Position numbers and translations under genes: made by a program
Shown here: piece after piece, positions 57,950 through 64,000 of the stretch
Layout: the number at the start of each line of letters is the position of its first letter
Position numbering within the stretch: the first letter of the stretch is position 1
The notes under the pieces: generated by a model
Database searches by the model: none
Told to the model about the DNA's origin: nothing
Seen by the model: only the letters and a program-made list of their open reading frames with translations
Assembly: GCA_946965045.2 (NCBI GenBank)
Contig: OX337228.1
Coordinates: 4,960,001 to 5,024,000 of the forward strand
Direction of reading: 5' to 3'
Origin: Epithemia pelagica
Taxonomy: Eukaryota > Protista > Bacillariophyta
DNA: 64,000 nt

Positions 57950-58909
57950 CTAGTCCTCTCCAATCATCTTAGCAGACTCCCCGAACAAGAGAGTGTCTGG
58001 TTCAAGAGGCATGCACAGCATCATCATGAGACTGGTGAAAAAGACAATAAACAAACCAACTGCGGTCCACAAGACGACATTGAAATACTGGATCTGAAAC
58101 ATGCTCTTGTACGGAGTGACCCATTCTCCGTAGGAATTGTAGTAACCATAACCATAGTATCCAGCAAACATCTGAGCGAAGGGATTCTCGTCCTCAGCCC
58201 CATTGTTGCCTCCGTCTTGGTTGTCGTAGTAACTTTTCTTTTGTAGGAAATAATATTTTCCTTGTTGGCCTTGTTCTTGTTGTTGCTGTTGATCCTCCAG
58301 TCGGCGCCGAGTAGCTGAAGACTCTTCTTCGACTACCAGATACACGACAACAGTCTTGCCTTCATCTTTCAACTTCTTGTCCATCTCACGAACCATCGAT
58401 CCAACATCTTTATCCACACTATCCGCTGCTGTAGAGTCTCCCACAGTCATCTTGACTCCAGTGAGAGATGATCTCTCAGCGGCCTTTTCTACGGATTCCG
58501 GCAGCGCCCCGGTCACTTCTTCCCCGGTCTTGGCTTTCGATACGAGCGTATCGCAGTGAGAGCCGCTAGTCTCCATTTGACCAACAACATAGCTGTTTTC
58601 GTTCTCAAAGAGATCCGCAATGGAAGGCATCAGTTCCATGTTAACTGCGTTTCCCGACAAACCGACTATCACCCCGGCATCAGCCTTCTTAAAAAGATCG
58701 GGTACAACCGGCATACCAGCATGTTGGTTCGTGCGGACACCATGCATGGACTTGAGGAAGGAACTCACCCCCTCAACCGATGCAGCTCTTGATTTCGAAG
58801 ATATCCGGCGAACGGAGCCACCTACCCCTAATTCAATCACAGCGATCCTGGTGGAAGCGTCAACCACACTTGTAAGGGTGAGAAGGAGAGAGAGAGCAAC
58901 CTTCATCAT
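57950..58909 (-). CDS. ATP6AP2/(pro)renin-receptor-like V-ATPase accessory protein
   Basis: Signal peptide, a basic site TRRRLE, and a C-terminal segment QYFNVVLWTAVGL...MMMLCMPLEPDTLLF resembling the ATP6AP2 TM plus short tail. Confidence 0.6.
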   Translation of the reverse strand: MMKVALSLLLTLTSVVDASTRIAVIELGVGGSVRRISSKSRAASVEGVSSFLKSMHGVRTNQHAGMPVVPDLFKKADAGVIVGLSGNAVNMELMPSIADLFENENSYVVGQMETSGSHCDTLVSKAKTGEEVTGALPESVEKAAERSSLTGVKMTVGDSTAADSVDKDVGSMVREMDKKLKDEGKTVVVYLVVEEESSATRRRLEDQQQQQEQGQQGKYYFLQKKSYYDNQDGGNNGAEDENPFAQMFAGYYGYGYYNSYGEWVTPYKSMFQIQYFNVVLWTAVGLFIVFFTSLMMMLCMPLEPDTLLFGESAKMIGED

Positions 58910-60539: not shown

Positions 60540-63500
60540 TTAAAATTTCTGCAACGTCATGGTGCTCATGAATTGCTGGTAGAGCCGTCCTGAAGAGAAC
60601 ATCGACGAGATGGCAGCGAATGTCTCGTCGATGTTTTCCATTGTCAACTCGACAAAGAAAGATCCCTTCGAGACACTGCACATTGTTTTACACTCCTCGA
60701 TGTGCTCTGGTTCCACATCAACCCCCAAGATGATCAAGTGAACATTGCTCTCATTTTCCCTGTTCATGCGTGCTATCTGCCACTTAATTGACTGGTATGG
60801 GCCGGAATCCCAAGAATATCCATCAGTAAAAAGTAGGACATAAGTATCAACCTCTTGGGACACCGACGAATCCAGAACAACCTGCATCGCGAAGGGCAGA
60901 GCGGAGCATACCCTTTCGCTGGTAGATTTCGTTGCAAGATCCAAAACGTTCTTTTGTTTGTCTTTGAACTCTCCTTTCGGACACAACTCAAGGGTCTGGT
61001 CGCCTTTAACAGTGTAGGCTACGACGGCGACACAGTCCTCATCTGTCACGTGGTTCTCAAAAAGGTTCAAACATTTTGAGTTGATCAGAGGGAACACTCC
61101 ATCACTTTCCAAACGCTCGTTCAATTCAAGTGCGAATATCACACACTTCCCTAAAACCAACGTTGGGCCTCGACACGTTCTTGACATTCTCCTCAATGTA
61201 GAACTCACAGAGGAGAGAGTCTGTGATGACCAACCATGCCCATCGTCGCTTTGTGTGAAATTCAAAAGTGCCGTCGAGGCGAGCCCAAAAGGCCCTTCCA
61301 ACAAGAATTCATCCTCTGTGAACATTCTCATCGCAAGTCGGGCAGCCTCGGATCGGTTCCCCTTGCAGCCATTAAGTCTAATGGCAGCTCCTTCAAGCTC
61401 CTGGAGTCGACCAACTCTACTTACACAGTCAAAGAGAGGCGCTGATACTTCGTGCCACGCAGCAAACAAAAGCTCATCAGCTTCGTCCACCAGTCTAGCC
61501 GGATCCCATATGCTAGCAACGCCTGTGTCACCGAAATGAGCACAAAGACCGTGAATTCTTCGAAGCATTCTGCTGAAGCATTCATCGGAGAACTGAAGCA
61601 ACAACTTGTTCTCTATGAAATATTCCTTGACATCATAGTCCAAGTCTCGTGCCCTCTTGATGTCCTCCAGGCCCCTTTCTCTTGCATTTGCTGGAGCGTC
61701 TGACTCTCTTGCAAAGAAAAGGAGGAAGAGCCCACGATTGAACAACCGGTCGGCTAGCTCACGTGCGAAAGCAGATTTCGCCGAGAAACTATCTGCCTTG
61801 TCAAACTCAGTTTGGCTTATCGAGACTGCCTCGTCAAAAAGCCGAGTAGCAAAGTCGCCATATCCATGAGTGAGGGACCCGTCCGTTTGTGTCCCTAGTT
61901 CAAGGATTCGCGCTAGTACTATATTTCCCAGGTTGTTGCATGCTATTCCTATAGCTTTCCGGTCGTTGATCTTCCGGAACAATTGGATCGCATCACTGAC
62001 TATCTGGCTTGCCCAGACTAGATTTCCTGAGTAAAAGGCCGCGTTTGCAATCCTCACAATCTTGTAGAGCTTCGAAAACGAGTTATAGACTTGATGGGTT
62101 TCACGAGAGCCGCCCCGAAGTGGCGGTATGTCTCGTTTTCCCTCAATGGAGTTGATGTTCCGAACGGCTCTTAGAAGCGTAATCATTGGTCGGGTTACAT
62201 GAATTGTCACCTACACCATAAAAGGAAGAAAACTTAGAGATGCCAAAGTTTCCAAACCCAATATATGGAGTCATCCTTACCTTGCACACAACAAACAAGA
62301 AAACAATCGAAAGAACAAGAATTATGACTGCGTCAATAATGGCTAACCGATCAAGGTCACCATACATCGTTTCTTCGACCTCTTCGAATGACCGCCGAAT
62401 ATCTCGGGCGAAGTTGACGATTGCTACCGAATACATGGTTTCTGTTCTTGTCGTGACTCCCATGTCGAGACGACTTGGGTCTAATGATGCGAGTATAGTT
62501 TGGTTAACAGCAGCATATGCAGCCACCAATTCCTCCTCTTCTCCGTCCTTCGTTTGTCTGGTGAATGTTGCCAAGCCATGTTGGCCTGCCTTCATCGACG
62601 CTAGGACGCCCTTCTCAAATCCATCCTTGTCCTGGGGACGATTGCCGTGATTCTCGAATAACTCATCCGTGATTTTCGAAGAATTCCATGTCTTTGATTT
62701 ATTCGTTCCCACAACAACATCGCCTTCGTATATATCAATGCCAGGTGTTACAAGAAACGATATGGGAAAACTCAGAGAATGGAATGCTTCTTCAAGCAGT
62801 TTGTGTGGATAGTCTAAGAGCATCACTCCCACAAAATCACCATCAATGGGGTTAACAACAGGAGTTGCGATGCTCAACCCCACTGGACCTGACGGGCCAA
62901 ACAAGTATGGTGCTGTCATGTGTAACGTGCTTGATTTTCGTGTTGTACTATACCAATCACGGCAACGTGGGTCGAACCCGTATTTTCCTTCGGGACAAAG
63001 CTCCGGTGCGATCAAAAATGCTTTATTTCCTTCGTCGGAAACAAAGAAAGAAGTGGTTGAATGAACATGGGAGCAACCAGTGAACCCACTAAACATTCCA
63101 TCTGCTTCAAATCCAATGAAACTTCCAAGTATTTGCCTCTCATATCCAGCGGCATTGCGGTAATTAAAAAGAGGAAACTCAACGACAGCCAGAGCGGATG
63201 AAACCCGAAGTCGGTCGTAAGTTGTCTCGAACCCTGCGGCGTTTGCACCCTTTTCCGCCCCAGGTAGTTCAGATGCATTATAATTCCAGATCGTTTCTTC
63301 AGGTGAGGCAGGGAAACTGGTGACATTTAGACGACCCCCTGTGAGGGGATCCATATCTAGTTCCAACACTGAGTAGAATCTCGCTTGCCTACGGCGTGAT
63401 TCGTGTCGGTCAAACTCTTCGGTGCAAGACCTGATGGGCTCAAAGGTATCGTCCCAATCACATGGACATTGATACGCGTCAGATAACAAAAGGTCACACT

Positions 63501-64000
63501 TGTAAATATCGGACGATTTGCATTCGTCTGATGCAGTCTGGAGTTCAGTGAACGAATCGGCTCTAGGAACTGCACCAAAATGGAGCCAGGAAGCCATGCG
63601 CGCGATCCAGTACAGATCGCGCCCCGGAGAAGCTAGAATCATACCGACCAATGTTGCCTTCGACATCACAATCGATTCATAGGCTTGCATCTCAAGGTCA
63701 TACGAAACCTGGTTTAAATCGTCAACCCACGCTGGAACGGTATCGATCATTGCTTGAGTGACGATAGCTGTAATGATAGTATTTGTCACCAAGAGTGGAA
63801 TGACAATAAGCAACACAATCCAGCAAAACAGGCGAGAGCGATAGACTTCCCTCCCGCCTTCGAGATCTTTAGGTCCTTCTTCGGGTAAACTAGCAACAAC
63901 TGGCCCTACATGTTTCTTTGGAGGTGCAGGAAACACTGTGTTTGAGAATGCCTTCAAAGCCTTCTGTTCATTAACTGTGGTAGAAACAGGTTGATCAGGC
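60540..64000 (-). CDS. Receptor-like membrane protein TM-dCache-TM-HAMP-TPR-vWA (5' end beyond the window)
   Basis: The frame is open from the window edge to a donor at 62280; intron 62211-62280; last exon 60540-62210. dCache FDPRCRDWY...TAPY...SIATPVV...GDFVGVMLLD, HAMP VTRPMITLLRAVRNI...RETHQVYNSF, TPR IACNNLGN, vWA ...LLFTDG...LIILGV. Confidence 0.85.

Follow-up and report, generated by a model that had tools for sequence, protein, structure and literature searches.

Can a diatom sense amino acids with the kind of receptor that bacteria use, and if so, through what output would such a receptor act? This question is raised by a gene on the minus strand of a 64,000-nucleotide stretch of the Epithemia pelagica genome (assembly GCA_946965045.2, contig OX337228.1, forward-strand positions 4,960,001 to 5,024,000), which we refer to as the window. 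The gene consists of three exons and its spliced product has a length of 1,804 amino acids; just the latter half of this gene lies in the window, and the upstream part was read from a 1.64-Mb contig of the European Nucleotide Archive (L001; a window coordinate equals 75002 minus the L001 coordinate). The protein contains two bacterial-style membrane sensor units in tandem, followed on the cytosolic side by a tetratricopeptide repeat (TPR)-like solenoid and a VWA domain, and we regard it as a candidate receptor for dissolved amino acids.

The domain order is transmembrane helix (TM) 1, dCache A, TM2, HAMP A, a linker, TM3, dCache B, TM4, a HAMP-like hairpin, the TPR-like solenoid and the VWA domain. 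Hydropathy analysis places the four hydrophobic helices at residues 27-45, 519-537, 736-754 and 1229-1247, the last two of which are encoded in the window:

63763-63819, minus strand: TM3, residues 736-754; Kyte-Doolittle peak 2.6, basic flank before and acidic flank after
62284-62340, minus strand: TM4, residues 1229-1247; hydropathy peak 3.18, six acidic residues before and three basic residues after

Two long loops (residues 46-518 and 755-1228) contain every one of the 12 cysteines that the family conserves, along with 12 of the 15 N-glycosylation sequons; the 16 cysteines on the cytosolic side are all unconserved. Both long loops are extracytosolic. The cytosol holds the juxtamembrane segments, the linker and the last 557 residues, and for the segments at TM3 and TM4 this placement is based on the charge bias around those helices. 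An earlier note on this DNA, made from the letters of the window, had described a membrane helix, an ectodomain, a second membrane helix, helical repeats and a VWA domain in this order, and had predicted that the repeats and the VWA domain are cytosolic. The order is present as claimed, on the minus strand, and charge bias, conserved cysteines and sequons all agree with the predicted side. The retrieval of upstream sequence that the note had proposed completed the gene, but it also revealed that the view from half a gene was incomplete: the protein is a tandem double sensor with a second TM-dCache-TM-HAMP unit.

The second ectodomain, ectodomain B, lies entirely within the window:

62341-63762, minus strand: ectodomain B, residues 755-1228; dCache_1-type, comprising a long stalk helix plus distal and proximal modules
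63133-63579, minus strand: insertion of about 150 residues in ectodomain B (ectodomain residues 62-210), located past the stalk helix and ahead of the first distal-module strands

An AlphaFold2 model of ectodomain B built with 78 relatives (predicted local distance difference test score, pLDDT, 92.6; predicted template modelling score 0.89) displays the elements of the dCache_1 fold, namely a stalk helix, two stacked PAS-like alpha/beta modules and a C-terminal helix leading into the membrane helix. When compared with known structures by VIA-align, the model matches the bacterial dCache_1 domains of PctD, Mlp24, Mlp37, PctA, PctB and CtaA with Z scores of 17-18.6 over 231-267 aligned residues, covering the targets almost fully. 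The top match is PctD (Z 18.6; 267 of 316 residues, root-mean-square deviation (rmsd) 3.6); Mlp24 aligns over 232 of 237 residues (rmsd 3.5) and PctA over 236 of 239 (rmsd 3.6). The top Foldseek matches are solely bacterial and archaeal dCache_1 sensor domains (E 2e-8). Additionally, a sequence profile of 14 relatives compared with the PDB matches Vibrio Mlp24 and Mlp37 (E 6e-9) and Pseudomonas PctA (4e-5), and the Pfam family MCP-like_PDC_1 scores below threshold (15-17 bits, cutoff 27). Bacterial targets of 230-260 residues span residues 12-462 of the model; what makes the diatom domain longer is the insertion that follows the stalk helix, in which five cysteines are invariant and which bacterial dCache_1 domains lack. 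In 19 of 19 full-length relatives, all eight cysteines of this ectodomain are retained. Therefore, both the sequence profile and the predicted fold identify ectodomain B as a genuine double-Cache domain of the kind found in amino-acid receptors, in agreement with the earlier assignment of this region as dCache; the Pfam score taken alone is sub-threshold. The failure to match dCache by profile or structure that the note had named as overturning its proposal was thus not seen.

Amino-acid binding by such domains has been traced to a small set of residues. In the dCache_1AA motif, Y121, R126 and W128 contact the ligand carboxylate and Y144 and D173 contact the amino group (PMC8915833), and retention of the five positions is a published predictor of amino-acid binding (PMC8915833). 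R126 is lost in amine receptors, which separates them from amino-acid receptors (PMC10104139). The corresponding segments of ectodomain B are the following:

62950-62976, minus strand: F-D-P-R-C-R-D-W-Y, the N-terminal half of the motif, aligned to W-D-P-R-V-R-P-W-Y of Mlp24
62905-62916, minus strand: T-A-P-Y, with Tyr as the Y144 equivalent, aligned to T-A-P-Y of Mlp24
62812-62829, minus strand: G-V-M-L-L-D, with Asp (residue 1071) as the D173 equivalent, aligned to G-S-I-F-Y-D of Mlp24

In profile alignments these residues are in register with Mlp24, Mlp37 and PctA. By PctA numbering, the diatom protein has Arg at R126 (residue 1022; conserved in 70 of 78 relatives), Trp at W128 (75 of 78), Tyr at the structural position Y129 (73 of 78), Tyr at Y144 (66 of 78) and Asp at D173 (71 of 78), and the ligand-contacting positions rank among the best conserved of ectodomain B across these 78 relatives. 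The motif can thus be read from the translation just as it had been described before, with R, W, Y and D present and Phe in place of the first Tyr. Since the position that amine receptors lose is kept here, the sequence points to carboxylate-bearing ligands.

Ectodomain A (residues 46-518), which is encoded beyond the end of the window, is a diverged copy of the same domain. The profiles of the two ectodomains align with an hhalign probability of 94% over 261 columns, and the profile of ectodomain A matches Mlp37 in the PDB (E 9e-9) and, weakly, human CACHD1 (E 0.026). The motif is less strict there: the six positions read Y, R, W, F, H and D in this protein, and Y, R, W, Y and D are kept in just 12-14 of 19 family members.

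Each sensor unit is followed by a juxtamembrane segment that resembles a HAMP domain, and the second of these is encoded in the window:

62031-62210, minus strand: HAMP-like helix-connector-helix after TM4; Pro in the first helix, G-G-S-R-E starting the second helix, and N-S-F-x-K-L

The AlphaFold2 model of this segment consists of helices at residues 2-20 and 36-60 joined by a loop at 21-35 (pLDDT 57-86). Both regions have the HAMP layout, in that they follow directly after a transmembrane helix, form a helix-connector-helix and contain a Pro and a Glu that are invariant or almost so. Profile searches returned less. Of 22 relatives, 5 have a match to Pfam HAMP (PF00672) in the first region (best E 1.5e-4), and the Epithemia protein has none in either region; for the second region, only HAMP_2 was matched, in 2 of 17 relatives (E 0.059). 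When profiles of the juxtamembrane regions were compared with the PDB, chance matches alone were obtained, such as colicin immunity and HIV matrix proteins. We consider both juxtamembrane regions HAMP-like, with thin statistical support. The HAMP domain that the earlier note placed next to TM4 is backed by its position, the residue pattern and the predicted hairpin; no significant profile match supports it.

The linker between HAMP A and TM3 is also cytosolic, and its last 60 residues are encoded at the end of the window:

63820-64000, minus strand: linker between HAMP A and TM3, last 60 residues; conserved V-x-P-A-P-x-K-x-x-x-G and R-S-x-L-F-x-W, from the translation and the family alignment

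The whole linker (L001 10589-11182, continuing to 63820-64000 of the window) is largely of low complexity, yet short motifs within it are sharply conserved. Further motifs of this kind are G-F-S-G-x-G-A-S and E-I-x-N-x-x-T-W-x-S-D-F-Q-Q-L-Y. From their sequence, the conserved linker motifs look like docking or modification sites.

If the two ectodomains are the input of the system, the remaining question is what serves as its output. Nowhere is the protein better conserved than in its C-terminal exon (76 homologues, 30-67% identity). Its AlphaFold2 model (pLDDT 85.5) is composed of three pieces, the helix-loop-helix (exon residues 1-60), a solenoid (64-343) and a VWA domain (350-548), with a short conserved tail at the end:

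61182-62021, minus strand: TPR-like alpha-solenoid, exon-3 residues 64-343; about 14 helices, many invariant polar residues
60567-61163, minus strand: VWA domain, exon-3 residues 350-548; Pfam VWA (PF00092) 24.5 bits, cutoff 23.8
61113-61130, minus strand: L-E-L-N-E-R after strand beta-1, at the D-x-S-x-S site of the metal ion-dependent adhesion site (MIDAS); family consensus E-L-S/N-E-x
60813-60830, minus strand: F-T-D-G-Y-S, with the retained MIDAS Asp, invariant or nearly so in the family
60543-60557, minus strand: C-terminus T-L-Q-K-F-COOH; family pattern [TS]-M-E-x-F-COOH

The solenoid model consists of right-handed helix-turn-helix pairs, as expected of a TPR fold. It matches the TPR domain of LGN/Pins (Foldseek TM-score by target 0.48), KLC1 (VIA-align Z 16.7, 238 residues aligned) and sNASP (Z 16.4), where Z scores near 13-16 are less specific for helical repeats. 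The Pfam TPR profile has no match in this protein, and TPR_12 is matched in 4 of 51 relatives (best E 1.7e-4). The VWA domain matches ITIH1 (Z 18.8, rmsd 2.6, 177 residues) and further Rpn10 (17.7), TFIIH p44 (about 16.5), vWF A1 (16.9) and integrin I domains (Z 16-18); Pfam VWA is matched in just 8 of 51 relatives. The candidate MIDAS Thr in A-T-K-S-T is mostly kept. Searches of Pfam and NCBIfam with all exons and with five full-length relatives revealed no kinase, cyclase, phosphatase, methyl-accepting chemotaxis protein (MCP; MCPsignal) domain or other catalytic family. With regard to this part of the protein, the earlier claims agree well with our results: Foldseek and VIA-align support the TPR-like and VWA folds, the family alignment confirms that the first MIDAS motif is degenerate (LELNER) and that TDG is kept, and the statement that no kinase, cyclase or methyl-accepting domain is visible extends from the window to the upstream part, where such a domain had been named in advance as an observation that would overturn the proposal.

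The last six residues of the protein are modelled more confidently than the block that precedes them (pLDDT 84 and 66, respectively). Members of the family that have no VWA domain keep the C-terminal pattern, joined via a low-complexity linker of 40-85 residues; it is seen in P0161, P0157, P0129, P0142, P0147, P0165 and P0172. Conservation of this kind suggests that the terminal peptide has a function, which could be to bind in the TPR groove or to act as a sorting signal. The first of these possibilities is proposed on account of the confident last six residues, the retention of the tail without the VWA domain and a structural match to a KLC1-peptide complex that spans model residues 49-552.

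A search with the ectodomain profile retrieved 644 cluster representatives at E <=1e-3, 291 of them at E <=1e-30. The named members are diatoms only, both pennate and centric: Seminavis robusta (CAB9499287.1, "expressed unknown protein"), Nitzschia sp., Odontella aurita, Amphora coffeaeformis, Proboscia alata and a metagenome-assembled genome of Bacillariaceae. That deposited copies are annotated as unknown proteins is attributed to the fact that standard Pfam thresholds miss all domains except for a marginal VWA. One subfamily, which includes the Seminavis protein as well as P0161, P0157, P0129, P0204, P0165, P0147, P0142 and P0172, has no VWA domain, with the two Cache units, the two HAMP-like regions and the TPR solenoid all in place; within the family, the VWA module is thus optional. 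No relative emerged from pattern scans with the cytosolic and ectodomain profiles, a method that detects fairly close relatives only, across 185,579 bacterial and archaeal genomes. Marine metatranscriptome contigs match positions 60540-61004 of the window, within the last exon only, at 99-100% identity, and one of them comes from an oligo-dT library and extends past the stop codon.

The combination of domains can be compared with several known systems. With the bacterial dCache_1AA receptors (PctA/PctB/PctC, Mlp24, Mlp37, Tlp3 and CtaA) the diatom protein shares the ectodomain fold, the TM-dCache-TM-HAMP order and the register of the motif. It differs from them in having the unit twice, in the Cys-rich 150-residue insertion and the eight conserved cysteines, in a TPR-VWA scaffold that takes the place of an MCP, kinase, cyclase or phosphatase output, and in being encoded by a spliced eukaryotic gene. 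The alpha2delta/CACHD1 proteins are alike in their eukaryotic host and in combining dCache_1 with the amino-acid motif and a VWA domain, and CACHD1 likewise has no enzymatic output. However, the Cache domains of the diatom protein are contiguous, its VWA domain is C-terminal and cytosolic, and HAMP-like and TPR-like parts are added, whereas all eukaryotic dCache_1 proteins found in the published survey carry an extracellular VWA domain inserted in the Cache domain (PMC8915833). Eukaryotic histidine kinases of the Sln1/AHK1 type have an extracellular Cache-like loop (PMC6944256) and, like the diatom protein, are membrane sensors of eukaryotes in which two transmembrane helices flank a contiguous Cache-type ectodomain, but they signal via a histidine kinase and a receiver domain, with no amino-acid motif reported, no tandem sensor and no TPR-VWA part.

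The best fold matches of the cytosolic part, the TPR domains of LGN/Pins and KLC1 and the VWA domains of Rpn10 and TFIIH p44, all belong to proteins that bind partners and do not perform catalysis; their identity to the diatom protein is only 10-16%, and none of them is attached to a transmembrane sensor. The sole match over the whole cytosolic exon (396 residues, TM-score 0.54 by query) is an ESM Atlas cluster annotated Cache/DUF2753/TPR/VWA (953 amino acids, 52 members) from Candidatus Thorarchaeota (Asgard archaea). It contains the same Cache, TPR and VWA set as half of the diatom protein, but it is archaeal, has half the length and presumably a single sensor unit, and is a lead by shape only. 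A protein search with the cytosolic profile aimed at these Thorarchaeota proteins returned family members only, and a feature search of the ESM Atlas gave only a generic VWA lead (0.75). A literature search, which did not cover the supplementary list of eukaryotic dCache_1AA proteins of PMC8915833, found no description of this architecture. It departs from the published rule for eukaryotic dCache_1 proteins by joining contiguous bacterial-style Cache-TM-HAMP units to a non-enzymatic TPR-VWA part across the membrane.

In our view the protein is probably a transmembrane receptor that binds amino acids or close analogues as ligands and has partner binding by the TPR-VWA scaffold as its output. 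The earlier note had proposed an amino-acid or small-molecule receptor that signals through protein-protein interaction; the amino-acid ligand and the chemosensing role named there are putative. A number of observations speak against this. Pfam dCache_1 (PF02743) scores only 18.2 and 21.6 bits here against a gathering threshold of 45, and the best relative reaches 36.7. The equivalent of PctA Y121 is Phe in ectodomain B (in the family, Tyr in 62, Phe in 13 and Leu in 3 of 78; the aligned residue of Mlp24 is Trp), and ectodomain A has His at Y144 and Phe at Y129. The HAMP-like segment adjacent to TM4 has no significant profile match in Pfam or in the PDB profile search, and hhalign gives a non-significant probability of 8.5% between the two HAMP-like regions. 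On the output side, the metal site of the VWA domain is degenerate, with an incomplete MIDAS, and the existence of a VWA-less subfamily means that the VWA domain cannot be essential for the core output of the family. The metatranscriptome contigs could include DNA carry-over, and none of them crosses the intron.

Three other explanations have to be weighed against the receptor. The animal proteins alpha2delta and CACHD1 are Cache and VWA proteins that act as ligand-sensitive partners of calcium channels, and by analogy the diatom protein might be an auxiliary subunit of a channel or transporter, in which the Cache domains tune trafficking or gating and the TPR-VWA part tethers the complex. The model does match alpha2delta-1 (3jbr_F, Z 16.4; the VWA domain of 8if3/8if4), ectodomain A weakly matches CACHD1 (E 0.026), there is no enzymatic output, and Rpn10 and TFIIH p44, among the best VWA fold matches, are stable complex subunits with a cytosolic VWA domain. 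We nevertheless hold a role of this kind to be unlikely: the VWA domain and the Cache domains sit on opposite sides of the membrane, with no insertion of the former into the latter, unlike in every alpha2delta/CACHD1 protein in PMC8915833; the TM-HAMP-like segment after each Cache domain is a hallmark of transmembrane signalling proteins; and the best matches are bacterial receptors, not alpha2delta. The least convincing possibility, to which we assign very little probability, is that of a structural or adhesive membrane protein with relic, non-signalling Cache domains, for example a cell-surface or frustule-associated scaffold. While the weak Pfam scores of every domain, the degenerate MIDAS and the missing enzymatic output would fit it, relic domains would not retain pocket residues, and the ligand-contacting residues are among the best conserved in 78 relatives; strong conservation is also seen in the juxtamembrane segments and the cytosolic exon.

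The protein could also be a receptor for something other than a free amino acid, such as a biogenic amine, taurine, a compound like gamma-aminobutyric acid, a peptide or diketopiperazine cue or a bacterial metabolite, with the motif serving as a partial clamp for carboxylate and amine groups. The top structural match is an amine receptor, PctD, within 1 Z unit of the amino-acid receptors, and Mlp37 binds taurine too (5avf). The Phe at the Y121 position, the Cys-rich insertion beside the distal module, which could reshape access to the pocket, and the diverged motif of ectodomain A all leave room for a different ligand. On the other hand, R126, the carboxylate contact that amine receptors have lost, is kept in 70 of 78 relatives, and the family retains all five motif positions jointly, the combination published as predicting amino-acid binding, so a ligand of this other type appears improbable to us.

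The analysis shows the gene model, the topology signals, the dCache, TPR and VWA folds, the conserved motif and the lack of any recognisable enzymatic domain. For a receptor of amino acids or close analogues, the following sequence of events is the most likely, in which we infer the ligand class, the transmembrane signalling, the function of the HAMP-like segments and the partner-binding output. The protein would be a four-pass receptor of the plasma membrane or an endomembrane, with two tandem TM-dCache-TM-HAMP units followed by the TPR solenoid, the VWA domain and the conserved tail. An amino acid or analogue with an alpha-carboxylate and an amino group would bind the membrane-distal pocket of ectodomain B; ectodomain A may bind a ligand too, via its looser pocket. 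The last helix of the ectodomain and TM4 would then shift, as in bacterial dCache receptors, and the juxtamembrane helix-loop-helix would relay this shift to the TPR solenoid, which begins three residues later. As a result, the choice of cytosolic partners by the TPR groove and the face of the VWA domain would be altered, and the output would consist of recruitment or release, not of catalysis. A more speculative version, which we put forward only tentatively and hold to be rather doubtful, is that of a single-chain pseudo-dimer, in which the four transmembrane helices and two HAMP-like hairpins form the bundles that bacteria build from two subunits, two Cache pockets feed into one output, and the tail [TS]-M-E-x-F-COOH docks in or leaves the TPR groove, either in cis or between neighbours.

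The gene model on which this protein is based combines the window with the upstream contig. Two long minus-strand open reading frames are found in the window, at 62143-63957 and 60540-62210; the reading frame has no start codon in the window and is open past position 64000. In the L001 sequence the start ATG lies about 2.1 kb past the window end, and 675 further residues are encoded upstream of the window. The first intron, outside the window, has 74 nucleotides (GT..AG; L001); the stop codon is at 60540-60542. The second intron lies within the window:

62211-62280, minus strand: intron 2, 70 nucleotides, GTAAGG...GTGTAG; joining of the exons restores the frame

There are 18 full-length relatives (1,612-2,000 amino acids) that align over almost the entire length at 26-36% identity. 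Both splice junctions are ungapped in these alignments, several relatives have uninterrupted reading frames, and the junction of intron 2 is read through by the relative P0005. Splicing is deduced from these homologues, since the RNA contigs leave the intron uncovered. We also considered that the two reading frames might be separate genes or a pseudogene, and rejected this because uninterrupted relatives of 1,760-1,803 amino acids span the junctions without gaps. An Rfam search of the window gave no match.

Two neighbours of the gene may be mentioned. A giant gene of >3,856 amino acids with matches to DUF3638 and DUF3645 lies on the opposite strand about 3.7 kb past the window end (L001 1-7329). 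Downstream, a 319-residue open reading frame at 57950-58909 on the minus strand has a signal-like N-terminal peptide, a Gln-rich and a Tyr/Gly-rich stretch, and a C-terminal hydrophobic helix.

Diatoms are responsible for a large share of marine primary production, and they respond to organic nitrogen, bacterial metabolites and pheromones. To our knowledge, no diatom surface receptor for such cues has been identified, and none was found in our literature search. A large diatom family that keeps the residues which bind amino acids in bacterial and human Cache proteins therefore provides concrete receptor candidates. In terms of evolution, contiguous bacterial-style Cache-TM-HAMP units survive here in a eukaryote. 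The pseudo-dimer with its tail switch, if true, would represent a logic of receptor signalling that is undescribed in eukaryotes or bacteria, and would also provide diatoms with a dedicated receptor family for dissolved amino acids or related cues.

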